Notes under the pieces: generated by a model
Told to the model about the DNA's origin: nothing
Seen by the model: only the letters and a program-made list of their open reading frames with translations
Databases searched by the model: none
Made by a program: the position numbers and the translations under genes
Part shown: one piece after another, positions 1 to 63,656 of the stretch
Layout: every line of letters begins with the position of its first letter
How positions within the stretch are numbered: the stretch's first letter is position 1
Assembly: GCA_029953675.1 (NCBI GenBank)
Contig: JAMWBK010000006.1
Span: forward strand, 558,001 to 622,000
DNA length: 64,000 bases
Origin: Rhodosorus marinus CCMP1338
Taxonomy: Eukaryota; Plantae; Rhodophyta
Reading direction: 5' to 3'

Positions 1-672
1 ACTCTGGGCGCTTTCAGCAAAGGAAAGACTGGGTGGAGGACCTGTTACGTGAGGAGCATCACAGCGAACAGTCCGCCAGCTCGGGCTTTTCGGGTGTGTG
101 ACGATCATAAGAGAAGTCTTTTGCTGCGGACATAATGGTTACTAAGATTCAGTTCTACCCGTGCAATGGGAGCATCAAAGCTGACTCATACAAACTTCGA
201 CATTGAACTTGTTTTCTTGTTTTTTCCATTGTTTCGAGAGGTCCGTAATTTAAGGTAACTTGAAGTTCTTATTTTGAGCTATGGATTCTTATTTTATCCT
301 TTTTGTATATTTATTCGTGCTCTGCGTATTTATAGTATATTTTGGTTCTGACGGGGAATGTTTGGGGCTTACTTTACTCTAGGCTATTTTCACCCCAATT
401 GAAATATCCCGTTTTTATTTTGACAAAAGTGTATCTCACGTGATATCTGCCAAATTCCACGCACTTACAAACTTACACCCAATTCCGGTTAAATGAGATG
501 TAGAATTTACAATGTATTATGGTTGATTTCGGAAATAGATACACCAATTGTCCAATCTTGTGCTCCGATGTCACACGAGAGCAAGTAAAATCTAATTTTT
601 AGGCTGTATTGTTATTTTTAATACTTATATAATTTACCATGTCCAATGAGACGTAAATATCATAAATTTGTG

Positions 673-1150
673 GATTCGATGATTGAAGTGATTGAGGGTG
701 ACCTAGAGCATTGATTTTCCCTACTTTCTGAGTGGCGATCATCAAGCTTGGAGTTGGATTGGGGAGGTCATAGACGAAAGCATGGACATGTATGCGTTCC
801 AGGGACTATTGCTGTGTGATAGTAGAGACGCTCAGAGGTATAAGCACTGATAGACTCAAGGACATGTAACATTTTTTGATCGAGCGTTTCAAGGCACGGT
901 TATACAAGTCGCTTATGGAATTTAGAAAGCTGAGATTATCCGGTTCCGGGAGCATTCTCCGGGGGGATGGCTAAAGCACATGTACTGGGAATTTATGTGC
1001 GAACTAGGGGTAACCCCCTGCATTCCAAGGTTTCTAGCTACGTCAGAGTAATGGAATAGTGCCTGATCCTGGTGATCGGCAGGTAGCGCCAATGTGCAAT
1101 ATCAGCACTGTCCTACAAAGGCTTTGGTTGAGCTGCTCGTAGGCATCGGC
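673..1150 (+). pseudogene. Possible decayed Ty3/Gypsy-type aspartic protease relic
   Basis: One + frame, broken by in-frame stops, reads HVCVPGTIAV***RRSEV*ALIDSRTCNIF* (ALIDSRTCNIF at 844-876), resembling the retropepsin motif ALxDSGAxxNF. No LTRs, RT or intact ORF seen. Confidence 0.3.
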
Positions 1151-1758
1151 AAAAGCTCCTTTTCATCGTTCAGAAAATGGTAGCATCTACCCCTGGATAA
1201 TTCTTCTGCTGGTATTCCCAGCCCCTAGAAAGGCCCAATACAAATGGCTACCCGATAACAACTGGAACGGATCATGTTCAGCCGCTCTGCCCTTCTACAG
1301 CAGCTCTACTCCTAACACACAAGAGATCTACCATTCAACAGCAGCTCTACGCTTCTACAGAACACATTCGACTTTGTTCGACATTGTCAGAGATCGGTAC
1401 TCCAAGAGCTTCTAGTGGATGGAAGCGGACCAGCATCGAGCACCTTGACGGATGCCCTAGACTCAATCAACCGCGACTAGGTTGCTCTTCACTGGCGTTG
1501 TAGTTCAAGGCCTTCATGCTCAAATCCAATAGTAACTTGTGAAGTGGACTAAACAGCCCTCAACACGTGTCTCGCGACGGCTTCTTCAACGTGCAAGTCG
1601 TCGTTTTTAGTGATGGTATGCAAACTGCTACAGAATCAGTTGTCCAAAATGGGCAACCGATCTTTGCTTCTGCGCACAGCAGGGGTAGCTACTTTTGATC
1701 AATCGAGTGGAACAGCTACACTTTTGAGCACCAGGACGTACGAAAACTAGCCAATGGG

Positions 1759-3051
1759 ATGATGAAGAGAAAGTACCAGACAACTATGGAGTCATTCATC
1801 AAGACCGCTGCCAACAGTGACGAGGGTTTAGAGGAGTACAATTTGAAGTGGAGTCGTGATGACGACGTCCTCTGGGCAGCTACGAAGAACTTTTCTCTCA
1901 AGGAGGAAGAAAAGGAACTAAAAGTTGCGGCTTATGATTTAGATGGAACCATAATAGGTACCAAATCTGGAAAAGCTGTTGGAAAGCATGCTCACGACTG
2001 GAGGCTTTACGCGCATTTAGTACCGGAGAAACTAGTTAAGGAGACCGACAGAGGCTTCGTCATATGCATATTCACGAACCAAGCTGGCATCAAGTCGAAT
2101 TATACGCCCGAAGGAATGATTCGGGTAAAGTTCCAACAAGTCATAAGAAAACTGGCTGTCCCGTGCGCTATTTTCGTATCGTGCACCTATGGCTATAGTC
2201 GCAAGCCGTCAACAGGAATGTGGAAAACGTTCCTTCGCAGCGTCTCTAATGGCAAATCTATTGCCTCCAGTAGCTTCTTCGTCGGAGATGCTGCGGGGAG
2301 ACAAAAGGATTTCTCCGATTCTGACCGAAAATTTGCACGTAACTGTAACCTCGACTTTTACACTCCTGAAGAGTATTTTTATGGAGACCAGGACAACTCT
2401 GTTCGAGATCTGCCCCTCAAGGGAATTGACTTCAAGGCTATGCTGGTGAAGGAGCCAACGTCACTGTTGGATCCACCGAACGCCCTCGATTCGCTGAAGG
2501 CAGGAGAGCAACAGATGATTATCCTGATCGGCTATCCGGGAGCTGGAAAGAGCACATTCTCTGAGGCACACCTCACTCCTCTGGGGGTTGTTCGGATCAA
2601 CATGGACACTCTGGGGACAAAAGCAAAGTGCTTCTCCCTAGCTCAAACTTCGCTCGCCGAAGGTCGCAGTGTGGTCATCGATAACACAAATCCCAGACCT
2701 GATTCTCGTGGGCCTTTCATAGATATTGCCAAGGCCCGAAACATTCCAGCGAGGTATAGTCAGTTTACTGGGAGCTAGCTGGAAGTATACGTGAAGACTG
2801 ATCCAAGTCCTTTTCTGAATTCATCTAACAGGGCATTTCACTTCCAGGCCAGCAAGGACTTTGCGATGCACATGAGCGCAGTTCGACGCAACCAAGGTGG
2901 TAGAATGATCCCACCGCAAGCTTACGCGCTTTACAACAATGGGTTTCGGAAGCCACAGCTTGAGGAAGGTTTCTTGGACATTGTCAGCGTCGGATTTGTA
3001 CCTGTGTTCAAGGATGAGGCTCACAAGCAAGCTTTCCTCGAGTGCACGTGA
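1759..3051 (+). CDS. PNKP: Polynucleotide 5'-kinase/3'-phosphatase (2 exons; intron 2754-2831)
   Basis: HAD motifs YDLDGT, FTNQ, RKPSTGM and FVGDAAGR..FSDSD, then P-loop GYPGAGKST and VIDNTN. Intron gtatag..ctaacag joins the ORFs in frame. Start codon uncertain; no FHA domain seen. Confidence 0.9.
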
Positions 3052-4234
3052 TCTTCACAGTTCACTGACTTCAGGGCAGTGAATCTAGGGTTGCACGAAG
3101 GTAGCAAAGTGCTCTACCAACGCGGTTTGTGGATGTACCTGCTTCTGCTTGACTTCTTGAAAGAAGGCGAACGGGAAGCAGCTTCGACTCGGTTTGTACG
3201 TCCCGTACGGCTTCCCTAGACTTGTAAATTATTGTAAAAAGACGAGATGGCAGAGATGACAGAATTCTTTTGATGTTCTGGGAGTCATGCTGGTGTTACA
3301 GCAAGTGCCGACTCTGATCTAATGAGCACAGTTTCAATAACCTGCCTCGAGCAGATCAATGAACTCCCCGCTTCTCGAATTTTACCTCTCGTGGTTCGCG
3401 GGTGCCGCGCACTTGTTCCAAAGCTATAGGGAAGATAGGAAGCGTTTATTCTCAGCACAAACCGCTCGGGCTCGGGTGAGCTTGATAGGGACATTTTTCA
3501 GGGTGGACTGACCAGCATTCTCCTCCAAAGCTCCTCCAGTGAGACCCATACTCCTCCTGACTTGTGAAAACGAGGACATACCACCCATCCGTGGACTGAC
3601 CTATGCAAAATCTAATACGGGCATTCTTGTGCGGAGGCAATCCAGGCTCAAAGCGTCAACACTCATTCCTAAAATATCCGTCACAAGTCCGACCAAAAAA
3701 ATTAACAAAGCTTAAATAACGCATATTTTCGTCCGAAGAACGTTAAGTTCATAAATTAATGCAAAACTATGCCTGGACAATAGACTTTTTCCCAAGTTTT
3801 AAAATATTTTAGAAATACTCATTTTTGTACTTCCCCTGAAAGAAAACGCCGTCGTCGACGGAGACAAATTTTCTTCCTCAAATCGAAAACGACAAAAATT
3901 CCAGCCATTTTAGAGGGGGGATAAATAGCTGCACCCTGGAAACTATGAGAAGAAGCTAACCTCCCTAGACTCAATCTTGTCTTTCTCAAAAATCACCCCC
4001 AGAATTTAACAAGAACGAAATATGTCAAATTTTTTTTCGAAGACAGCGTAGACCCTTAGCTGGTCCAAATTCCTGAAGAAGAGGAAAACAGCAGGGGTTA
4101 TCTGCTGAGGGGATGAGAGAACATTATTTCGGAGTAAGAATGGAGTATCAATCAAAACCAAACAAGAATGAATATTATTCTTAAATAAAAAGATCTATCA
4201 ATCATTAAACGATTACAGTGATTGACTCTTGACG

Positions 4235-4281
4235 TATGACGTCGGGAGTTGGGAATTTGCTCACGTCGATAATCGACGGCC
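4235..4281 (+). promoter_or_regulatory. Candidate ribosomal-protein promoter module (TATGACGTC 4235-4243; TCGACGGCC 4273-4281)
   Basis: The same two 9-mers occur in the same order and orientation upstream of RPS14 (54271, 54286); the TCGACGGCC copy starts 181 bp before the RPL35 ATG. Confidence 0.5.
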
Positions 4282-44793: not shown

Positions 44794-46335
44794 ATGGGCG
44801 AAATGGAGGAACCTAGCTACGACTTGACCAGGTCGGTTTGTCAGTATTTGGATCGGCATCTGGCTTTTCCCCTGCTTGAGTTTCTGGAGATGAACGAGAG
44901 CGGACTATCGGTAAGAAGCTATAGATATCGTTTCGATTGGAAGTGTTTGAGGCACAGGTTGGTTGCTCATGTGCTTTTCTTGACTCCGTCTTCTCCTTTT
45001 TGAGCAGCCATACGACCGGGAATCAGTCGTAGCGGCAAAATTGGATCTTCTTCTCAATACGAACATGATCGATTTCGCGGTCGATATCTATCGAGAAGTA
45101 CACAACACTGATACCCCGCCAGATGATCTGATGGACAGACGAAATGAAGTGCTTATGGTTTTAGGGGGACTTCAGGACGTGTGCTCACCATTCCTCGTCA
45201 TATTCGAGGATGAAGCAAAGCTGGCAGAATTGCAAGAAGAGAATCTCTTCAACATGCAGCATCTGGAGACCCTCGGCATTACAGATGAGACTCTGGAATA
45301 TTTGTACGATTATAGCAAGTTCCAATTCGACTGTGGAAATTATTCAGCGACCTCGGAGTACCTGGCCGTGTACAGACTGCTGCAGACTAAGAATCCGGAG
45401 AGAGAATTTGCCGCTTTATGGGGAAAGTTGGCTGCCGATATTCTCATGCAGTCTTGGGACAGCGCTGCCGAAGGTTTGAACCAGCTTAAGGACGAAATCG
45501 AGTCCCACTCGAAGCAAGATGACTTCAATCCGCTTCAGTCTCTGCAACAGAGAACGTGGCTGATACACTGGGGACTCTTCGTGTTCTTCAATCATCCAAC
45601 GGGGAAAAGTCTCATCATTGAGATGCTCTTCCAGGACAAGTACCTCCACACAATTCAGACGAATTGCCCTCACATCCTGCGCTATCTGACGGTGGCGGTC
45701 CTTATCAACAAGAAACGGAGAAATGTTCTCAAGGATTTGGTTCGGGTAGTTCAGCAAGAGCAGTACAGCTACCACGATCCAATAACCGAGTTTGTGGAAG
45801 CTCTGTATGTGAACTTCGATTTCGAAGGCGCTCAGAACATGCTCCAAAAGTGTGAGGACACGATTAGGGGAGATTTCTTCTTGGTGGGCTGTTTGGACGA
45901 GTTCGTGGAAAGCGCACGATTGACTGTATTCGAGATATATTGCCGTATTCATAAATGTATTGACATAGACATGCTCGCAGGAAAGCTTAACATGGATCGC
46001 GAGTCGGCGGAGAGGTGAGGTGGAGAACCACCGGTGGTTGTTTTTTTTTCGCCAGCGCATTTTGTTAGCAAGCTTCTCACACATAGTTCTCTTCCCTCAG
46101 GTGGATTGTGAATTTGATACGGACAGCGCGCCTCGACGCTAAGATCGACAGCCAGGCGAACCAAGTTCTCATGGGAGTGAGAATTCCTAGTATTCACGAA
46201 CAAGTGGTGGAAAGCACAAAAGGCTTGATTGTACGATCGAACAACTTGATACAGTTCCTAAACCGGGGCGTGGTAGGACAAGAAGGCGGCTATAGACCGC
46301 ATTGGAGAGGTGGAAAGCAAGATCGTAGACAATAG
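44794..46335 (+). CDS. EIF3E: Translation initiation factor 3 subunit E (INT6), 3 exons
   Basis: YDLTRSVCQYLDRHLAFPLLEFL..LLLNTNMIDF..YDYSKFQFDCGNYS..ALWGKLA..QRTWLIHWGLF..PHILRYL..YHDPIT..FEIYCRIH..WIVNLIRTARLDAKID. Confidence 0.97.
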
Positions 46336-46605: not shown

Positions 46606-49600
46606 TTAGATGGCCTTGTCTGTACCTGCCATCGCTTGGTATTTCTCCTTCACTCTCGTGTACATCCGGCGCATGTATGTGGTCGTTTTCTTCTGAGCGT
46701 TTGCTAGCTCATTTGGCCAGTCGAGTTCCAACGCACTGCGATAGAGCACTCTGATCCTTCGCTGCGCTCTGATCGCGACCGGACTATCCATCGCCATTCT
46801 GGTAAGCTCTGCACATGTTACTTTCTCGTCTAGGCGAGCTCTAAGACTTTCTACTTCCTGCAGAAGCCGGGAGTTCTCTTGATTCGCCGCCTTCAGTTTC
46901 TCAGAAAGAGCGTCAGCCTCTGCGTCACTTGCGGAAGCACTGGATTCACCAATCTTCCCCGGTGCACTGAAGCGCGAAGAAAGCTGCTTGTCGTAGGAGG
47001 AGAAACGCTCTTGGATGGACCGCTTCTCTTGCAACGCGCTCTGGAGCTGTTCTTCTAGTTCCCGAATAGATCCTTGCATGCTTTGGCCAACTTTGGCCTC
47101 TACCTCTGCCACTCGTTTCTGAACGTAGGATGTAACCGCTGGAGCGTTGATCACGTCCGCCAATGCAAAGTCCTGACCCACAGGAAGTTCCGCTCTCTGT
47201 TCCAACGCTTCATTTTTGGCCAACAGCTCCTTCACGCGATTTGTCGAAGCATCGAGTTCCTCCTGCAATCCATGAATCTTAGCTTGCATCGTGGACTCAT
47301 CTCCAACCGTGGTCGACTTCTGGATCTCCAAAAGTCTCTTTTCCTCTCCGACCTCTACGGCCTTGGTCACCCAATTCTCAAGCTCCACTTTCAGCTCAGA
47401 AATTTCTTTCAGTGCTTCCGTTTTCTCTTTTCTCAGCGTGTCGATCTCATCTGACATCGCTACGCCCGCGGAAGTGAAACCTCGAGAACTGACTTCTGGC
47501 TCACGCTCTTCTAGTCTACTAGTCACTTCTTCAAGTTCTTTCGCATGGGCGTCCTTGAGCTCTTCTCGCAGCGCTCTCAATTGTGCTTCATGCTCTTCTG
47601 AGCTAAGCATAATTGAACCAGCAGATGCTTTGGATGCCTCCGCGATTTCCTCCTCGAGCGCCTGACTTCGTTCGAACAAGTCCTTGCGTTCACTTTCAAG
47701 TTCGTCCTTCTGGGCAAGCAAACCATCCATCTCCTCCTGCATTTCCTCCATGCTCTTCTCGTGCTTTGATCTGAGCTCGATTTCTTGGTCCAACAGATCT
47801 CTCAATTTCGACAGTTCAACCTCTACTTCGCTGGACCTGGAAACTTGCTCAGCCATCCCAGATGCTTGCTCCTGCAAAGTTTCTAGCTCTTCACGAAGTT
47901 CTCGAGTTTCTCCATCACTGTCCTCCATGAGGGCAATTTTCTCGATCAAAGTTGCGTTCTCTGATATAAGCTCCCTATTGGTATCCGTTAATGTATGCAC
48001 TTGCTTCTCAGTCTCTGCGTATTTCACCCGCAAGCTGTCTTGTTCAGCAGTTGCTTCCTTTCTCTCAGCATCTGCGTCAGCGAGAACGGCCTCCAGCTCA
48101 GCGATCCTGCTCTCCGTGTCTTTTTTAGCCGCATCAAATGCATCTTGCTCGCTCGTGAGTTGAGCCCTCGTAGTTTCCAAAGTTGCCTCAATCTCTCTCA
48201 ATCTCTCGTTATCAACAGTTCTCGCCTTTTCTGTTTCAAGGCTAGTGACCGCCTCGTCACGAGAACTGATAAGCTCGCAGATCTCATCATCTTTTCTCTG
48301 TATAGTCTCTTCCAGTTCTGCGACAAGTCCCTCGACAGATTTCAGATGTTCCTGAGTGCTCACAGTTGCCTCCCGAGCCTCAGCATATTGCAATTGAAGT
48401 TCGTCCTTTTCTTTCGCCATCGTCGCGAGATCCTCACGCAAGGGTTCTATCTGTTGCTCCAAAACCTCCAACTCTTTCTTCAGGCTCTGGATCAAGGATA
48501 CGCTTTCTTGGTGCTCAAGTTCCGTGGAAGCCCTGGCAGCTGAGAGATCCTCGATCACCTTCTCAAGCTGTGCATCTTTCTCTCTGAGAACACTCTGCAG
48601 AAGTTCGTTTTGTGCCCGTAGCTCTGCCAAAGAAGAGCTCACTTCTGCAAGCTCCTCAGCCACTGTAGCCTCCTGACTCTTCGCCCGCTCAGCTTCATCC
48701 CCCTTCTTATTAAGATCGCTCTCCAGCGATTCATTCCGCGCTTCGAGCTCCAGCAGCTTCGACTCAAACCCTCTTAGCTCTCCAACCAGAGCTTCCTTTT
48801 CTTTAAGATCGCCCTGCAGCAACTCATTTTGCGCCTCGAGCTCCTCCAACCGAGCCTCAAACTCGGTAACCTTCTGAAGAGCCTCAGCTTTCTCGTTGGC
48901 ATCCTCTGCAAGTGCTTTGTTGACTCTGGCGAGTTCATCCACTTGCGCTTCGAATCCACGAAGTACATCAATCTCAGTCCTCTTTCCACTGAGGTCTGTT
49001 TCGAGTTCTTCTTTGCTCAGCTTCAGTGCACGTAGCTGCAATTCCATTTCAGCAACCCGCTCAACCACAGCAATTTTTGCTTCGACTTCGCTCGTCAGCT
49101 CATCGTTGCGGGTCCTGGCACTGTTCAACTGCGATTCCATCTCGCTTTTCTCGTGAGCGAGTCTAGAAACTACTTCCTCTTTTTCGGTCTGGAGTGCAGA
49201 TAGCTTTTCTTCTGCCCCGCTGGTGGCCAATCGTGAATCGTTTAGCTCTCTATCCCGTTCCGCAAGGCTGTTTTCGATACCCTCTAACTTCGCCCTCAAG
49301 TAAGAAAGTTCCGTTTCTTGAACTTCAGCGAGTGACTCCCTTGCGACCACCTCTTGCTCTTTCCTCTCGAAGTCTTCCTTTACGGTTTTCAGTTGTGATT
49401 CCAGGGCGGAAACTTTCTGGCGGCTCCTTTGCAGCTTCTTGCCGTAGACCTTTGATTGCTCCAAATCACGCGTTAACGATTCCTTCGCTGCCGCTAAGGT
49501 AGCGAGTGCCTCCTCTTGCTCACGGACCCTTTTCTTGAGCTCCGTATTTTCTTCCACAGCTGCAGTACTTTTATCCGAAGTTTCGATTGCAAGGGCGAGC

Positions 49601-52488
49601 TCATTCTCGAGATGAAGCACTCTGCCCGCAAGCTCCTCTTCTGCCGACCTCTTTCCATCAAGGATCTGCTCGTATTCTGCGATCGACTCCTCATCCTGTT
49701 TCAATCTCTCCTGCAGGTTCGCCACATTCTCCAGGAGTTCGGCACGATCGTCCTCAGCTTTTGCGACGTCGTTGGTGAGCTGTTCCAGTCTGTGCTCTCG
49801 TTCAGTCGCTAGTTTCCGCAATTCATCCGCTTCGCGTGTAGCCTCCTCAAGATCGATCGCAAGCGTACCCTTCTCGCCTTCGAGCTTGGCCATATCACTC
49901 TTAGAATCTGACAAGCTCTGTTCAAGAGCCGAGATATGCTTCTCGGTCTCAGCACTTTTCTCAGTGGACTCTGCTTTAGCTTCATCCTGCATCGTCTGAA
50001 GAGTGTCTTTTGTTACCCTCAGCTCCTCCTCCAGTGCGCTAACCTTCTGGTGCTTCTTGTGCAGCTTCTTGGCTGCGATTTTCGTTTCCTTAAGCTGAGA
50101 TGCAGTCTTGGTTTTCTCTTCCATTGTTTTCTTAAGATTTTCTTCCATTTCCTGCAATGAAGTTTTGTATTTTTGCAATTCCGCATCCTTCTCCTCCACT
50201 TGATCTTTCAAATTCGAAGCTGCGGTCGAAAGGTCGGCCACGCTTGCAGTGAGCATGGAAATCTTCTGTCCGCTGCTTTCTTTCGCCTGTTCCTCAGCTT
50301 CTTGGGACTGCTTTTGTAAGCTTCCGTACTCCGTTTTTAAACTTTCCAGCTCTGACTCCAGTCCATCGATTCTATCCTGTGCTTTCTTCTCCCTCTCCTT
50401 GAAACTATTCTCAAGCTCTCTCTGTTTCTCCTCGACGCGCTGTTTGTCTGCATCCCTCGCAGACTTCAGGACGCGATCCGCCTCCCCAAGTTTGCTCATC
50501 TCACTTCGTAGGTCCAAGATGGTAGCGTTCAGCATGGATAGTTCGATTTCATGGTCTTCTCGGCTCGCTTGCTGATTGCTCGCGTACTCCTTTTCAGCAT
50601 CCTCTAGTGCTGTCTCGGATATTTCAAGTTTGTGGTGCATATCAGCGATGCTACCGCTCTTATTCTCGACTTCTTTTTCAAGGCTCTTCACTCTCTCCAC
50701 CAAATCCTGTTTGTCGTCCTCCATGGTCAGCAACTTGTTGGTCACCTCGGCCAGCTCAGCCTCTAGCTTCTTAAAGTTTTCCCTTTCTTCCAAGGCAGCG
50801 GTTTCCGTAACAGGTAGACCACGCGCAGTTTCCAAGTCCTTGTCTGCCTGTTCTAGTCTTGCGCAGGTTGCCTTTAAGTCTGAAATGTTGGCTTCCATGA
50901 GTGATATCTCCATCTCATGGTCCTCCCGCATTTCGCGTTTGTTCTGGTCCAATGTTAGCATGAGTTCCTCCCGCGCGGAGTTCCCAGAAGCTAGCTCTTC
51001 CCGGAGGGATGTGATGCTGCTCTTGTAATCTTCTGCTTGCGACGTCGCCACTTCCAATTCTTTAGAGATCCGTTTCAAATCATCCGCGACGCCGGCATTC
51101 TCATCCTCGAAGGATGCAATCAATTCCCGGAGCTTGTCACACTCCATCGAAAGATTCTCCCGGTCCTTCAAGAGCGAGTTTCTCTCATTTTCCAGCTCGA
51201 CGTGGCGGCTATTAACGGTTTCGCTTGTTGACGGCCCCTCGGATACAGGCGGTACGTCTTCACCAACTGCGCCACTCCTTTCCAGTTCTTTTCTGAGCTT
51301 TTCGATTTCAGATTCCCTCGAGGAAAGTTGCTCGGACAGTCGGCTCAATTCCTCCCTCAAAAGGCTGATTTCGGATTCTTCAACTGCGGTCTTGCTGCCC
51401 TCAACGTCTGAATCATCACGCGCCGCACGCATTTCGGGAATTCCACTTTCAGAAGTAGGTTGCGGAAGTTGTTCCACTTGTTCGAGTTTTGCTTTGAGAG
51501 TCTCTATATCCGTTTCTTTGCGCAACATCTCACTATTGAGGGTGGATACTTCCTTCTCCAATGCAGCAACCTTTGTTCTTTCCTCGTCGACAGTCCACTC
51601 AGCGGACTTAGACAACCCCGAACCCTGCCTCAGCCTCTCATTCTCATCCTGAACCTCGGCGACCATGCTCTCCAGTCCACGCATCTTGGCTTCCGTCATT
51701 TCATCCGCGTCTACACGCAATTGCTCTATTCTTTGTTGTTCGTCTAGCTGAGCTCGAACTAGACGGAGCTCTGTTTCCAAATCTTCAACTCGATCGCCGT
51801 CTCCATAAGGTATCACGGAGGACAACGCCTTCGCAATTGAACCATTGTTGGTGGAATCTTGTCGCCCAGAATACTTCCGAAGGCTTTTCTCGGCATCCAC
51901 TAGTTTTGTACGCGCCATGTCTCGTTCATACTGCGTATCAGATAATTCTCTCTCGAGATCCCGAAGATCACCAAGCAAATCCTGTATTCTTGAAGTGTTC
52001 TCATCAAGCGATTCCCGTTCCGCATCGGCAGCATCATTGTCATCTTCCAGCTTGTCCCCTTGAAGATCCCGCACCTGGGACCGAGCTAGTGCAAGCGCGA
52101 CCTCAAGCGAATCCCTTTCCTCAATTACAGCCTCTCTATCTCTTAGGATGTCACCCAGAGTTTTCTCGAGATCGTCACGATCAGCGAGTGCGTTATTTCT
52201 GAACAATTGGAAGGCAAAGGGATACATACATTAACCGCGGTCACAGATCGTATAAAAATTTTAAACAGAGCGAGCATACCTCTCCGCCCATAGAGTTTCA
52301 ACATCTAACGTCATCCCACTCTCAGCAGTTTCTGAATCCTCAGAAAGCTGAAATGACCTTTTCGCATCGAGTGACTCCTCACCACGCGGGTAACGCTCCT
52401 CCCCTCCCTCCTCACTCGCTGCGTTGACAATTTTCGTCAAATTATCGCGTGCAGTCTCGGCCTGTTGTTTAAAAGAGCCCCACATCAT
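46606..52488 (-). CDS. Giant acidic coiled-coil protein (~1,940 aa), golgin-like; intron 52199-52279
   Basis: 1,873-codon E/L/K-rich heptad ORF joined in frame (..WAER/NNALADRDDLE..) to exon 52280-52488 starting MMWGSFKQQAE. No catalytic motifs. Confidence 0.85.
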
Positions 52489-56143: not shown

Positions 56144-59080
56144 ATGGCTTTTCTAGTGAGCCAGCCGCTGCCAAACAGTCGGGCCAAGGAGCGGAGATGC
56201 GGCCGGGTGTTGGTGATGCGGGCAAACCCTCCTAAAGGATCAAGTACGTTCATTTATTTACCCTCACCTCGAGCTGGACAGACCGCTTGGTTTGGAGCCC
56301 TGCTCTAGTTCTGCTTAGCTGACGTTTGGACAACCTATTCGTGTTGGACAGAATCAAGAAGGAGGCAATGGCATGAGCGCCAGCTTGACCGGCAAATCGA
56401 GGGAAGAGAGAACGAAATCCCTTCAGATTACGACGTATTTAAGGATTCACCGCTTGACGGGAGCGATGACAAGGCGAGACAAAAATTCTATTATGTGCAA
56501 GCCCTGAGGGAGGAGAAGAAGGAGAATTTCCGGAGGTCAATTGCTCTACTTGAGAAATGTGTGGAGATCGATATTACCGATACATTCTCATGGATGGCAC
56601 TAGCGAGAGTAACAAAAGAGGTAGAGCCCCTTTCAGTGCCAGATGTGTTTGAGAAGGCCCTCGCAGCTTGCCCAGTCTCCGTTCATCTCCACCACGCCTA
56701 CGGAGTATACCTTGATAGGATCGGGAAAGCGAACGATGCCAGAAGCACGTTCGAGAAAGCGTACTCAATTGAGCCTGGAAATTGCTATGTCTGCCAGTCT
56801 TGGGGCCTGCTTGAGCAGCGTGCTGGCAATGCAGCACGTGCTCGCGAGTTGTTCCAAAAAGCTATTGCGGATAATCCAAACACGGACGTGTGCGTAGCGC
56901 TCGCAAAACTTGAGTCAGAAGAAGGTGACTTGGAGCAGTCTCGACAAAAGTTTGAGCTCGCCTTGTCTCTCGCCACGAACCCTGCAAAAGAATCTGATGC
57001 GTGTCGCGCGTGGGGGCAGGTGGAAGAAAAATTTGGAAATCTGGAAAGGGCGGAAAAGTTGCTGGTCAGGAGCTTCCGTGCCAGACCCAACGAGGAGACG
57101 ATCGTAGTTCTAGCAAAACTGAAGATGCGAAACGGCAACGCGCCTGGTTCGCTTCGCATGATTCGCTCCATCGAACGACCAAGAAAGCAATGGCCTTCTG
57201 TTGCCGCCATGAACGTATGGGCTTCTCTCGAGGCCAAGGCCGGTAATTTTGAAGATGCTCTTCGTGTAATCCGACTCGCTATCCATCGGTACGCCAATGA
57301 CTCTGGATTATATCTGACATGGGGAACCCTTGAGGACAAGCAAGGGAATATCGAGGGTGCGATTGAGCAGTACAAGAAGAGTATTGAAGTGAGGCCCAAC
57401 GGACCGGCATTCGTAGCACTAGCGGTTGCCGAAGTAAGTAATTTTTCTCGTCCTCAACAGCAGCGCTGGTGAGTAATTGACATGAGAATTTGTTCCATTC
57501 AGGAAAAGAGAGGCAACTTTGAGTATGCCCGAGAAGCTCTGGAGAAATCTCTCGAGGAGAATCCTCGACATGATTCAGCTTACAATGCACTTGGCCTACT
57601 TGAGATGGCGAGGGGTAACATAGATAGATCCCGCGAAGTTTTTGAGAAGGGCCTTGCAGAGTGCCCGACGTCTTCTGTGCTACATGGAGCTGCACTCCTC
57701 GACTTGCATGTTGGGGAGAAGGAAGCTGCAAGGGAAAAGCTGGAACGTGGGCTGCGGCTGACTAGGGAAGACACATCGTGGCTGTGGCACACCCTAGGAA
57801 TGCTTGAACTGCGTGCCGGTCAGGCTAGGAAGGCAAAGAAATTGTTTCAGGAGGCAATCAAAAGATATCCACAGAGCTCAGTGGTAGGTCAATCCCCCTT
57901 CGGATACTGGCTCTTTCAATTAGTTCGAAGTCGCTAATGAATTCGTTCTTGTGAATTTCAGTTGCTAGTTGGCTACGCCTTATCTGTCGCAGCGACGCTT
58001 CCCAAGGGCCCGGACCAAGACAAGGAAGTCCGAGCGTTATTTAGGAGCGCGGTCGAGGTGGATAAGTATCACCCGCAAGCGTGGCAATGCTGGGGCGTAT
58101 TTGAGTACCGACAAGGAGAAGTTGAACTGGCGACGAAGCTGTTCAAGGCGGGTTTGAGGTTCGCTCAACAGCATGCTGCGCTCTGGCAGGCGTGGGGTGT
58201 GCTTGAAACTGAGAAGGGTAACATATTCTCGGCAAGAAGTATTTTTGAAAGAGGGAACTCATTTTGTCCGAAGGATGTCCATCTACTACAAGCGTGGGCC
58301 TGCATGGAAGTGCGGGCCAGAAACATTCAGAGAGCCAGAGAGCTGCTTAGAAGCGCTCTTGCGGTTGATGACACTTCTGGTCCATGCTACAACGCGCTAG
58401 CTCTACTTGAATCGCGACATGGGGATATTGATGCTGCACGCCAAATCTTCTTGCGCGGGATTACGATGGCACCGCAGCATCCTCCACTGTACCGTACATA
58501 CGCTGAAGTAGAAGTAAGACAGCGCAACTATAGCAGAGCCCGGGAGCTCTTTGAGAAGGGACTTCAGATCGATCCGACCTATGCTCCGCTGCTGCACAAG
58601 TATGCCGAGCTAGAAGGTCTCCTCGGTAACCTTGAAGGGCTTAACAATCTTCAGAGGAAGATGTCCGCAATGTTCGAGGCGCAGCAAAGTGAGCCGGTGC
58701 TCGATGAAAATTCCTCACAGGCAATCTACATGAGGATGGAGGAGCCCAGCGGTGACTATGAGCCTGACACATTTATGGAGACGTCAATTGCTATAGAACA
58801 AAAGCGAGCAGCAGCTGAGGAGGAACTGAAGCGAAGCACTGTCGAGGAGTTTCGCAAGAACCCGTCCTCTCGATTACAAGAAGAGGACGATTCCGACCTG
58901 GATGACGACGGACTGGATGACGAGGACGATGAAGACGAGTATTACTACGTGTATGAAGACGATGATGATGATGATACTGACTGGGAGGAATCGGATGTTG
59001 AACTTGAGGAGATGACGCTAGAAAATCTCCCTCAGTTTGCAGACGACGATCCTGTAAAACCGTTGGAAGAGAATCTATAG
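56144..59080 (+). CDS. Plastid HAT (half-a-TPR) repeat protein, HCF107/Mbb1-like, with acidic tail; about 4 exons
   Basis: Transit MAFLVSQPLP..RRCGRVLVMRA; many repeats with W/Y-x-x-W-G/A-x-L-E (CQSWGLLEQ, YLTWGTLED, WQCWGVFEY, WQAWGVLET) and ARELF signatures; D/E-rich C-terminus. Confidence 0.85.
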
Positions 59081-59941: not shown

Positions 59942-60739
59942 GGTTGAAAAAACTCGAAAACAGAGGGAAAAAATAACCAAGCAAGATTCGTTCTTATCAC
60001 TATCGACCTGGTCACCAACCCCAAAAGTCAACCATGCAGCTCCCGCTGCCGCCCATCCCACCTGGTAAACGGCACGCCTTAACATGGTCAACGACCAGAC
60101 ACTCATGGATTCAGTGGTATCCATCGATCCACAAGATCTCGACAAAGAACCGATCGAAAATTTACCAAAATTCAATAAATCCTGTACCTCAGGGTGGGGG
60201 CTCTTTTGGCAACTTATGGTCCTTGTCTATCGACCGAAGCAGATGGTTTTAGGAGGATCATATCGAAGTTCAAAGATAGCTGAGCTGCCCTTGTCCTTGT
60301 TTGCCGATTAGTTCACTACCATGAACGCCAGTGGAAGAAGCTGGAATATTGCGATAGAGTTAAAAACAGGTTTGAGGAAGAATTTGTCCTCAATGGGGAG
60401 TGGGACTGCTGCAGTGTACTTCATTGCCCGTCGAGTGGAGCTTCGAACTTTCTGCCTTCACCACAGTCATCCTATAAGTGAACGGGATTTGATCCCATGA
60501 ACCACCGCTCATGGCTTAGTTGAATGCACGTGATTCCTGAGGTGGTTGATCTTGTCTCGTACAACCTCGTAACTGATCTGCACGTGTACCGGTGAAAATT
60601 TAGACTCCGGGGGCCGCTTACTACTGTTCCTGTAGCTTACATTAAGGTAAAATAAGCTTTTAAATATATCGAGCGTACTTGACAAGTGCCTTCTAAAACA
60701 GGTGGTCAAGGTCTCCTAAGTGGTAACCAATACGATTCA

Positions 60740-63223
60740 CTACTGAAGATTGCATCCTTTCATCCGCTTGCCCATTTTCTCTTCCGTTGAAGAATTAGAG
60801 GACGAGACCGGCCGACTGCGCTTCTGTTGCTTCGGCCCGGACTTCATCACGCGAGACCAACCAGCTTTTGACGCGCTCGTCCGAGCAGCACGCCCTGATT
60901 TCGATCTATGCCTCACGATAGAGCTGAACGGCCTTAGCTCTTGTAGCGTCTTTTTCCTTGACTTTCCGGAGACGATAGGTTTTGATTCGATGTCGGTATC
61001 GCTTTCAGAATCTACCTTCCTTAGCCCAGATCTTTTCTGGGCAAACTGCGCAGCTAGCTCTGATGATGATGGTATTTGAACATGGACTCCCTCACGAGAA
61101 TCTCCTGATTCGCCCTCCAGCGGTGAGTCAAGTCGGTGGTTACCAGTCTCGCCACGATTCTGCGACTTCTGAGCAGAGTTTTTAAGGCCCTTCGAGGGTC
61201 CGTTACGGGTTCTCTTGATGAGCTCATGTCCTCGTCGCTCTTCAAGGTCTCCCGCTGCTGCTTGGTTCTCCGGTTCCATCTTATCAGTAATCTGTTGCAC
61301 GTTCTCCCTCTGTTCCATGCGTTCCGTATGCTCGGTCCGTTCCGCCTGTTCGGTCCTTTCCGTCTGCCCGGTCCTTTCCGTCTGCCCGGTCCTTTCCGTC
61401 TGCTCGGTCCTTTCCGTTTGCTCGGTCCTTTCCGCCTGCTCGGTCCTTTCCGCCTGCTCCTTTTGCTCTGTCCGTTCCGTCTGTTCCGTCTCCTCTGTCA
61501 GTTCCGTCTGTTCTCCCGTCTGTTCTCCCTGTCCCGTCTGTTCCGTTTGTCCGGTCTCCCCTAGCTGCTCAGCATGTTCCGTAACCTGTGTCTGCTTCGA
61601 CGGGTCTCCTCTTTCTGAGGGCTCAAGCCTCTGATTTGCGACTGGGCGACCTCCGTTTTCCCTAGACTCTTTTTCCGATCTGTTCATGATATCTTCTGCA
61701 TATTCTTGCTGTGTTAGGGCGATCGCGTCTGGATATAGCTCTTCATCTCCGACTTTCAAGCCGTCTTCGGTGTCTGTCGAAGACTCTTGAGTCCCGAGAA
61801 TGTTTGCCGAGACTACCGCCCCTGCGCTGCTTGCGCTGGTCAGGTGTTGCCCTTCAGTTGGGTTTGCAAACGCCATTAGTGATACAGCTTTGGGTGCAGC
61901 AAGATCCTGAGCTGGGCCGAAATCCTCGGACAACTCATCCCGGGTCTGAAATCTGACAGTGATTCCACGCATTGAAGATGCTCCAGGCGGCATGTCATCC
62001 CTCTTGAGATCAGCTGACCTCGTTGCTATCCGAGGAACTGTGCCTGACGAGTCACTAGATTCGCGCAAGATCTGTGACTTTTGAACGCCAGCACCTGATA
62101 CTTGCGTATTCCTGGTTTCTATTCTATCGCCCTCAGCTTCTTCCCTCTGCGATGCGCTTGGAGGAGGCTCCCTCTGATTACGTTCAGTTGATAACGGAGC
62201 GGCGGATGACGCCATCTGAGACGCTTTGACGTACTTTTCATCAATTTCTTGTCGAAAATTTTCCGCAACTTGGGTGTCGGCAGCTCCATTATTCTGCGCT
62301 TGTCTCTCTTTTGTGACCACGGGTCTTCCAAGGAGGTATTGGGTCTCCAGCTCTGGATACTCAGACTCTGCTTCAGCAAGAGATGGTTTAGCACGAAGAA
62401 GAAGCAAAGGCAAACCCTCAAGTTGTTGTGGGGCATAGTTCATACCTAAATCTTCGACCGCAATTGGTTCACCATTAGCTTTAATTAAGTCACCATTCTG
62501 CTCAGAACCTGATGAAGACATGGCTACAAGTTCGAGCACAGCTCTGTTGCCGTCAAAGGATGGATTCTGCTCGGCTGACCGAAAGGGCTCATCTATCTTG
62601 CCCGTTCCGATTCCCATTGTTCGATGGTAGCGTTCTGTCCAGTAGTTGTCTAATTTACCCCGAAACCGGTTCTCCAAAGCCTGAAGGGGTGCAAGCATAG
62701 TCGCCACCCCCCTCACAAGCTTTGTCAAACCGAGGCCCTCTAGAACCTCGCGTAACTCCGGATCCTGTTCAATGGGAGTAGGAGATTCCATTTCCACAAG
62801 TACGTCACTGCCCCAAACCCACAAGCTTTCGATCATCAGTTGGAGATCATTGTCGGAGCCCGAAATTCGAATGCAGAACCAGAACTTCTTCGGTATGACA
62901 ATCTTCCCTGCGAGGGTCTCGAAGCTGTAGCCCAACGTGTCGGGGTCCATTGTGTTTTTACACTCCTCCGAAAGCTTTGCCCACATTGTGTATTGTCCAT
63001 CGAACAAAAGCATTCTACCCTCCTCCGGAACAACTGTAAGGACCTGGCAGTGGAGCACACGCCCAGGTCCATATTTGACTTCCAACCTGAACTCCTCTGG
63101 AGTTAACCTTGTCGCATCGGACCGAGTCGCAACCTCCACAAGTAAACTCTTGATCCATGGCCGCCTAAGTAGCGAAGGATCACGAAATTGCTTTCCAGGC
63201 ATGGTACCACCCCCTCCAACCAT
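60740..63223 (-). CDS. Intronless protein with N-terminal TPP1/Est3-like OB fold and long disordered S/TQ-rich tail
   Basis: Single uninterrupted ORF (first ATG 63223). N-domain LLRRPWIKSLL..CQVLTV..LLFDGQYTMWAKLS..SFETLAGKIVI..DLQLMIESL matches the TPP1 OB motif order. CDS well supported; homology less so. Confidence 0.75.
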   Translation of the reverse strand: MVGGGGTMPGKQFRDPSLLRRPWIKSLLVEVATRSDATRLTPEEFRLEVKYGPGRVLHCQVLTVVPEEGRMLLFDGQYTMWAKLSEECKNTMDPDTLGYSFETLAGKIVIPKKFWFCIRISGSDNDLQLMIESLWVWGSDVLVEMESPTPIEQDPELREVLEGLGLTKLVRGVATMLAPLQALENRFRGKLDNYWTERYHRTMGIGTGKIDEPFRSAEQNPSFDGNRAVLELVAMSSSGSEQNGDLIKANGEPIAVEDLGMNYAPQQLEGLPLLLLRAKPSLAEAESEYPELETQYLLGRPVVTKERQAQNNGAADTQVAENFRQEIDEKYVKASQMASSAAPLSTERNQREPPPSASQREEAEGDRIETRNTQVSGAGVQKSQILRESSDSSGTVPRIATRSADLKRDDMPPGASSMRGITVRFQTRDELSEDFGPAQDLAAPKAVSLMAFANPTEGQHLTSASSAGAVVSANILGTQESSTDTEDGLKVGDEELYPDAIALTQQEYAEDIMNRSEKESRENGGRPVANQRLEPSERGDPSKQTQVTEHAEQLGETGQTEQTGQGEQTGEQTELTEETEQTERTEQKEQAERTEQAERTEQTERTEQTERTGQTERTGQTERTEQAERTEHTERMEQRENVQQITDKMEPENQAAAGDLEERRGHELIKRTRNGPSKGLKNSAQKSQNRGETGNHRLDSPLEGESGDSREGVHVQIPSSSELAAQFAQKRSGLRKVDSESDTDIESKPIVSGKSRKKTLQELRPFSSIVRHRSKSGRAARTSASKAGWSRVMKSGPKQQKRSRPVSSSNSSTEEKMGKRMKGCNLQ
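61331..61456. repeat. Coding minisatellite: seven near-identical 18-bp units encoding (E/G)Q(T/A)ERT
   Basis: Units such as ctcggtcctttccgtctg at 61331, 61349, 61367, 61385, 61403, 61421 and 61439; degenerate 9/18-bp units continue to about 61560. Confidence 0.95.
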
Positions 63224-63656
63224 GCTCCTTTTTCTATCGATTCCTATCGACGGAAAAAAAAAACCAAACCAAAGCTCCGGGCTCAATCCCTACGATCATC
63301 CACACACGAAGACGAAGCAAAGGTGCTAAACACCTTCAGCTGCGTCGCATCCGTCGAGACCAAACATCATCCTCCGATAACTTGCTTCCCATACAAAGTC
63401 TCAACGGCTCCTCGATTTTCCCACTCCTAAACCCTGGACAAGCACTAGCACCTCATGAAAGCTACATCACAACAAATTTTTCAAATATCGACTCGGTACG
63501 TCGTCGCTTTCAGTTCACAAGCACATTGATGTCGTTCCTCCCAAACCGTTCATGAAGGATTGAGACATTGCCTTCTCCTCTTCCAACTCCGAGAGGCGAA
63601 AGGTAGTTCCCGCTAAAACAACTTCCTTCCAAAACCATTTGCTTGAAGGAATTGAG

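Follow-up and report, generated by a model that had tools for sequence, protein, structure and literature searches.

We analysed a 64,000-nucleotide stretch of contig JAMWBK010000006.1 (the window) from GCA_029953675.1, the near telomere-to-telomere nuclear genome assembly of the red alga Rhodosorus marinus CCMP1338 (Stylonematophyceae; PMC10250338). A gene on the minus strand of the window encodes a protein of 827 amino acids (aa), here called the window protein. We propose that a highly divergent TPP1/Est3-family OB fold makes up its N-terminal ~160 residues and that the protein has a telomeric role, and we give this full statement a probability of about 0.6. The homology itself is the firmer part: judged by profile comparisons, the N-terminal domain is very probably a remote homologue of the TPP1/Est3 OB folds. 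The window protein thus appears to be a remote, sub-threshold member of the family and not an established orthologue, because the statistics support homology and the Pfam threshold is not reached. TPP1 brings telomerase to chromosome ends in animals, and its fungal and ciliate relatives Tpz1, Est3 and p50 have related tasks.

Profile comparisons point to the TPP1/Est3 family

A word-indexed search of 5.8 billion proteins returned a sole match to the window protein, the Rhodosorus relative P0001. When 1.84 billion representatives were searched exhaustively with HMMER, two real matches and a spurious one resulted. The new true relative was P0002 (245 aa as called, 35% identical to the window protein, E = 9e-18 over query residues 8-140), and the spurious match, the repeat protein P0003, was discarded. 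P0002 is encoded on a 7.1-kilobase Logan contig (L003, run SRR22824290). When the window protein was compared with this locus by tblastn, we observed a match at 7e-23 over residues 9-186, and no similarity between the locus and the C-terminal 640 residues. Because the likeness is confined to residues 9-186, the conserved module consists of the N-terminal domain and the short helical segment behind it. A profile search and metagenome scans with back-translated motifs found no further family member.

We combined the window protein, P0001 and P0002 into a three-sequence profile (A2). Against 177,635 distinct PDB sequences (E ≤ 10), A2 retrieved seven sequences, all with the human TPP1 OB domain (best E = 0.017). 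The P0002 domain found human TPP1 in the PDB by plain phmmer (E = 1.5e-5, 28.2 bits; first non-TPP1 match at E = 0.83). TPP1 and Est3 share the Pfam family PF10341, whose curated gathering cut-off of 26.5 bits is an operational threshold and not a biological feature. P0002 matched PF10341 over profile positions 2-105 of 158, both as a trimmed domain (E = 7.8e-5) and as the full protein (E = 1.8e-4). No other Pfam family matched the trimmed domain, and the full protein had one extra match at noise level (E = 0.36). The links from the window protein to P0002 and from P0002 to TPP1 and PF10341 all fell on this one domain. P0001 did not match PF10341, even at E ≤ 10.

Next, hhalign compared the profile with alignments built from 14 mammalian TPP1 OB domains and three Est3 proteins. 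The human TPP1 OB and yeast Est3 sequences used here agreed exactly with the PDB. The alignment of A2 with TPP1 scored 33.1 (P = 1.3e-4, 114 columns). Upon addition of Est3 to the TPP1 profile, the score rose to 39.9 (probability 83%, P = 9e-6) and the alignment covered 134 columns, beginning at the PWI motif and reaching into the C-terminal helix. In 100 column-shuffled versions of A2 the score was 13.0 ± 2.7 (maximum 20.3), and the reversed alignment scored 11.5. The profile made from the Rhodosorus sequences only, without P0002, scored 35.7 against mammalian TPP1 (P = 4e-5; 100 column shuffles, 13.3 ± 2.6, maximum 22.1), and the TPP1 signal is therefore independent of P0002. Overall, profile-profile scores lay 8-10 standard deviations above the shuffled controls, with reversed sequences at background. 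The window protein alone scored 9.6 bits against the TPP1 hidden Markov model (HMM), above all 1000 shuffles (maximum 5.2).

A chance or convergent match to TPP1 would make the protein a lineage-specific orphan, perhaps another small beta-barrel, unrelated to telomeres. Identity to TPP1 was ~18-22%, and pairwise BLASTP of the window domain against the human TPP1 OB fold gave nothing meaningful, as expected at such a distance. These values speak for a chance match, as do the marginal best database-wide E-value of profiles that include the window protein (0.017), the missed Pfam cut-off and the failure of AlphaFold2 to fold the domain. Against it, independent PDB and Pfam searches converged on one family, no competing family fell below E ~0.4-0.8, a single register was recovered across methods, and the scores stood well clear of the shuffled and reversed controls. 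The searches found no chain (PDB-wide, E ≤ 10) or Pfam family of RPA, Stn1, Ten1, POT1, Cdc13 or SSB. A closer kinship to RPA or STN1, the outcome named by an earlier sequence-only reading of the window as speaking against a TPP1/Est3 homologue, was not borne out at the sequence level. We consider a chance match very improbable. Remote homology, as that reading had proposed, was upheld by the profiles, the link through P0002 and the permutations, although the window protein itself has no match in Pfam.

Register, signature residues and the TEL patch

HMMER placed A2 positions 9-114 on TPP1 2-105, and hhalign placed A2 columns 10-154 on positions 2-144 of the human TPP1 OB chain. The two programs gave the same register: LRRPWIKSLL was paired with LRPWIRELI, MLLFDGQYTMWAKLSEE with LLVSDGTHSVRCLVTRE, DPDTLGYSFETLAGKIVIP with DWEEKEFGFRGTEGRLLLL, DLQLMIESLWVWGSD with EFYLQVDRFSLLPTE and, in the C-terminal helix, DPELREVL with DLDVQKKL. 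The sequence-only reading had matched five strings of human TPP1 with motifs in the window protein. All five are present, in the order it gave, in the OB domain of PDB entry 2I46, and both programs reproduced four of the pairings (PWI, DG.H/Y, F..T.G followed by a basic and three hydrophobic residues, and the last strand). The fifth, GQLLEV with CQVLTV, was not recovered; the algorithms paired GQLLEV with EEFRLEV. The register at LHCQVLTVV..RMLLFDG appears ambiguous, because this segment is nearer the tight first hairpin of Est3 (CHFAKITKF...KVYASIRD) than the arrangement in human TPP1, where a long loop stands between the first two strands in place of the short turn of the window protein.

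We observed that W23 and D75 were invariant in all three family members and aligned with TPP1 W98 and D148, whose counterparts in the TPP1-Est3 alignment are Est3 W21 and D86. The tryptophan of the PWI motif (TPP1 W98/Est3 W21) and the aspartate of the turn between strands 2 and 3 (TPP1 D148/Est3 D86) are the signature residues of the family.

The human TPP1 TEL patch comprises E168, E169, E171, R180, L183, L212 and E215 (PMC4936895). In our alignment, E168 maps to D95, E169 to T96, E171 to G98, R180 to K107, L183 to I110, L212 to W137 and E215 to D140. Five of the seven positions are chemically similar, and P0002 retains four of these five (K107, I110, W137 and, at 140, an acidic residue). 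We regard the correspondence as no more than suggestive, since the C-terminal half of the alignment has low per-column confidence.

Comparison with known family members

Human TPP1 (ACD; PDB 2I46 and 7TRE, PF10341) is the closest known protein, with Est3 next. The likeness to TPP1 extends over LLVSDGTHSV/MLLFDGQYTM, FRGTEGRLLLL/FETLAGKIVIP and EFYLQVDRF/DLQLMIESL (TPP1/window protein), and equivalents of W98, D148, R180, L183, L212 and E215 are chemically conserved. The layout is also TPP1-like, with the putative OB fold at the extreme N-terminus, a predicted helical segment next to it and then a long, probably disordered region. Unlike human TPP1, the window protein has 827 aa, TEQTER repeats and a basic tail. 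According to Myler et al., TPP1 consists of an OB fold with a POT1-recruitment domain next to it, then a disordered linker (50-700 residues, the part with the least conservation) and, at the C-terminus, a partner motif (PMC8653790). The architecture of the window protein matches this description.

With Est3 of Saccharomyces cerevisiae (PDB 2M9V and 9SWN), the window protein has in common the N-terminal PWIK.L motif, and Est3 DSSH..LVEFSQEC resembles DGQY..AKLSEEC. In an alternative reading, the protein would be a constitutive telomerase holoenzyme subunit of the Est3/p50 type instead of bridging POT1 and duplex-binding proteins as a shelterin-type protein would. This would fit the likeness of PWIKSLL to PWIKALI and of DGQYTMWAKLSEEC to DSSHQILVEFSQEC, the short turn between the first two strands, and the fact that no TIN2 orthologue or TIN2-like partner is known outside animals (PMC8653790). 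However, HMM scores favored TPP1 (9.6-12.5 bits) over Est3 (~0 bits; 19 columns aligned by hhalign), and Est3, a telomerase subunit, is a bare, stand-alone OB fold of 181 aa, whereas the window protein carries a long tail, as do TPP1 and Tpz1. Taken together, we hold an Est3/p50-type subunit to be quite improbable and prefer a TPP1-like protein.

In Tpz1 of Schizosaccharomyces pombe, p50 of Tetrahymena and TEBP-beta of Oxytricha, an N-terminal OB fold contacts telomerase or a POT1-like partner and is followed by partner-binding segments (PMC4936895, PMC13577582). By analogy, the window protein may share their role and layout, which would make them its functional counterparts. No chain of these three proteins, which have PDB entries, was found in the PDB-wide searches at E ≤ 10, and no sequence similarity to them was seen. 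All three were recognised as TPP1-type solely via structure.

The gene is real and constrained

The peptide LLRRPWIKSLLVEVATRSDATRLTPEEFRLEVKYGPGRVLHCQVLTVVPEEGRMLLFDGQYTMWAKLSEECKNTMDPDTLGYSFETLAGKIVIPKKFWFCIRISGSDNDLQLMIESLWVWGS is the minus-strand translation of window positions 62807-63172 and corresponds to residues 18-139 of the 827-aa open reading frame (ORF). The sequence-only reading had quoted this peptide exactly and had placed it, correctly, in a red-algal genome. An identical 827-aa product is annotated on the same contig of the R. marinus assembly, with no Pfam family on record. A second ATG at 63202, seven codons downstream of the first, would give MPGKQF...; both ATGs are conserved in L001, the 2,886-nucleotide Joint Genome Institute contig (sample 3300017118) that encodes P0001.

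L001 is collinear with window positions 60659-63577 at 83% nucleotide identity and has no intron-like gaps. Relative to the window coding sequence (CDS), all insertions and deletions in L001 are multiples of three except for a single-base deletion at CDS position 802; gaps of 4 and 8 nucleotides, six bases apart, sum to 12. Beyond the deletion the frame is open to the same C-terminus (...MKGCNLQ), with ~88% aa identity throughout. The deletion, near L001 position 1190, splits the gene call, so that P0001 is misframed from about residue 260 onward and another gene call follows downstream. This single base, which may reflect a sequencing error or a genuine frameshift, therefore accounts for the misframed end of P0001. 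A 105-aa ORF at window positions 62119-62436 (minus strand), in another frame of the target gene, equals this wrong-frame tail (VRVCLQFFVL...) and was rejected as an artefact and not a second gene. With an annotated ORF and a frame that is open over its whole length in a relative at 83% nucleotide identity, the target gene is real and constrained.

Introns appear to interrupt the P0002 locus, and the 245-aa gene as called probably runs into one of them. The real P0002 protein may also have a long disordered tail. On L003 (positions 650-4260), likeness to the window gene ends near position 658 at a GT that resembles a splice donor. ORFs downstream of ~658 are rich in S, E and K and lie in other frames.

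Parts of the protein beyond the OB fold

Coordinates of the gene and its parts are given in Table 1. Residues ~15-150 are beta-rich. The short helical segment that the sequence-only reading had placed after the TPP1-like motifs begins with EGLGLTKLVRGVATMLAPLQALENRF, and residues ~155-195 were helical in both AlphaFold2 models, at low confidence. Seven of its residues (G165, L166, K168, V170, R171, A174 and P179) are invariant, even in the 35%-identical P0002. Because its position matches that of the TPP1 recruitment domain (PMC8653790), the segment is a candidate partner-binding motif, possibly for POT1. The hhalign alignment does not extend into the human POT1-binding region, and we saw no recognisable POT1- or TIN2-binding motif. 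A likeness of GLGLTKLV to human GLSLSQLL, noted by eye, is a tentative lead.

Residues ~230-560 are probably disordered, judging by their composition. A short 12-bp repeat inside the target gene (window positions 61504-61529) encodes TEQTER-type hexapeptides together with the 18-bp repeat, and repeat copy number differs between the window gene and L001 through in-frame insertions and deletions. The basic C-terminus reported by the sequence-only reading was confirmed (Table 1). It contains K/R clusters (KSRKK, KQQKRSR and KRMK), which are candidate nuclear localisation or partner-binding signals. Conservation of this tail in the L001 orthologue is high, for instance in KTLQELRPFSSIVR and TSASKAGWSRVMKS, and the tail has no recognisable TIN2-binding counterpart. 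The ten S/TQ sites that the same reading had counted were all found in the 827-aa protein, and an enrichment of such sites was rejected: 9.4 ± 2.7 sites are expected from 2000 shuffles of the same protein. The count is at chance level and is therefore uninformative on ATM/ATR targeting.

Table 1. Window coordinates of the target gene, its parts and other genes
Feature	Position	Strand	Basis or remarks
Intron-less complete CDS	60740..63223	-	827 aa + stop, ATG 63223; ORF list, translation, annotation
TPP1/Est3-like OB-fold domain (putative), residues 17-161	62741..63175	-	hhalign, HMMER, permutation controls, P0002 link
W23 codon	63155-63157	-	Invariant in family
D75 codon	62999-63001	-	Invariant in family
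Short helical segment (predicted), residues 162-194	62642..62740	-	Conserved in P0002; directly after OB domain
Acidic A/S/E/Q-rich region, residues ~230-560	61544..62536	-	56 D/E vs 32 K/R; no Pfam match
18-bp tandem repeat, 7.7 copies, 90% matches	61322..61459	-	Tandem Repeats Finder; TEQTER-type hexapeptides, residues ~560-640
Basic serine-rich C-terminal tail, residues 680-827	60743..61186	-	31 K/R vs 15 D/E, net charge +16
Polynucleotide kinase 3'-phosphatase, PNKP-like	1759-2778	+	PNK3P + AAA_33
eIF3 subunit E (eIF3e) fragment	45041-46018	+	eIF3_N + PCI
HAT/TPR-repeat protein	56495-59080	+	Annotated, 893 aa

Evidence that weighs against the assignment

Several results count against a TPP1/Est3-family protein with a telomeric role. 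The window protein matched zero Pfam families, whether whole or as its N-terminal part, even at E ≤ 10. Neither phmmer with the window domain nor the two-sequence Rhodosorus-only profile found a match in the PDB. P0002 scored 21.8-23.0 bits against PF10341, below the gathering cut-off. In the PF10341 check proposed by the sequence-only reading, the window protein is unmatched and P0002 has PF10341 as its sole credible family, at a sub-threshold score. Against a profile of Est3 only, hhalign aligned 19 columns (P = 0.04). The family has just three members in the databases searched. Conservation fails at two of the seven TEL-patch positions (E169 to T, E171 to G).

Structure prediction did not help. 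AlphaFold2 reached a predicted local distance difference test score (pLDDT) of 44.1 from the single sequence and 35.5 from the three-sequence alignment, and neither model was usable. The OB fold of the TPP1/Est3 family is a barrel of five strands in which a helix stands between strands 3 and 4 and a C-terminal helix packs on the N-terminal tail. In these low-confidence models, DSSP assigned three strands and a short helix, followed by two or three further strands and finally helices. This is the order expected of an OB fold with a C-terminal helix, in coordinates that are not trustworthy. Foldseek with the better model found nothing significant in the PDB (best E = 0.5). TPP1 chains came at ranks 2, 3 and 5 with a template modelling (TM) score of ~0.16; we attribute these ranks to the amino-acid term of the score, and they are therefore no structural evidence.

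Proposed role and possible re-use of the domain

By analogy with TPP1, the OB fold itself would not bind DNA. It would dock on the telomerase catalytic subunit (TERT) via a TEL-patch-like surface, and docking would recruit telomerase to the chromosome end and raise its processivity. Residues ~160-195 would bind the C-terminal half of a POT1-like protein that binds single-stranded telomeric DNA. The disordered tail and the basic C-terminus may serve in nuclear import, as a tether to other telomere factors, or both.

The domain may also descend from TPP1/Est3 and have been re-used for a non-telomeric job, such as a scaffold in another DNA-end or RNA-protein complex, in which case its presence would not imply a POT1-TPP1-telomerase module. 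Conservation with P0002 is limited to the OB fold and ~35 following residues, no TIN2-type or other partner motif was recognised, and two of the three acidic-loop positions of the TEL patch (E169 and E171) are not acidic; all of this is in line with re-use. On the other hand, the TEL-patch positions of basic and hydrophobic character are retained, as are the signature tryptophan and aspartate, and no characterised TPP1/Est3 member is known to act other than with telomerase or at telomeres (see also PMC8653790 and PMC13577582). Red algae themselves offer a point on either side. The telomeric repeat amplification protocol (TRAP) detected no telomerase in the red algae tested (PMC3622300), and telomere maintenance in the group is therefore poorly known, whereas canonical telomere ends are present on 12 contigs of the R. 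marinus assembly. We regard re-use as unlikely, and a telomeric role for the TPP1/Est3-like domain as the preferred reading.

Other genes in the window

The XRN1-type exoribonuclease gene just past the window end is divergent from the target gene. A 1,873-aa ORF at window positions 46606-52227 (minus strand) has no Pfam match, is rich in E, L, A and K, and has the look of a long coiled-coil protein. It coincides with a stretch at 48-52 kilobases where both AT and GC skew are strongly negative. The other genes of the window (the PNKP-like, eIF3e, HAT/TPR and coiled-coil genes) are ordinary eukaryotic genes.

Implications for telomere biology

To our knowledge, red-algal telomere biology is almost unexplored. 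The sequence-only reading had stated that no clear TPP1 orthologue is established in land plants, and this agrees with the description of Arabidopsis as lacking TPP1 (PMC4199523). In full-text literature searches, including one on shelterin evolution, no paper came up that describes a plant or algal relative of TPP1. That the window protein is the first TPP1 orthologue recognised in Archaeplastida is a tentative claim, to which we give slightly less than an even chance.

The expectation that such a protein would reshape views of telomere protection was overstated. The surprise is limited because animals, fungi and ciliates already have known TPP1 relatives, the family is on record from three other eukaryotic supergroups, and an ancient origin is the default expectation. 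The window protein is a very divergent new addition to an already known family and not a new kind. If our reading is right, the common ancestor that red algae share with animals, fungi and ciliates would have had a TPP1-type telomerase-recruiting OB protein, which would support the view that end complexes of the POT1-TPP1 type are ancient. A profile that includes P0002 could then uncover cryptic TPP1 in green algae and land plants, and the gene would offer an entry point into telomerase recruitment in red algae and possibly in plants.

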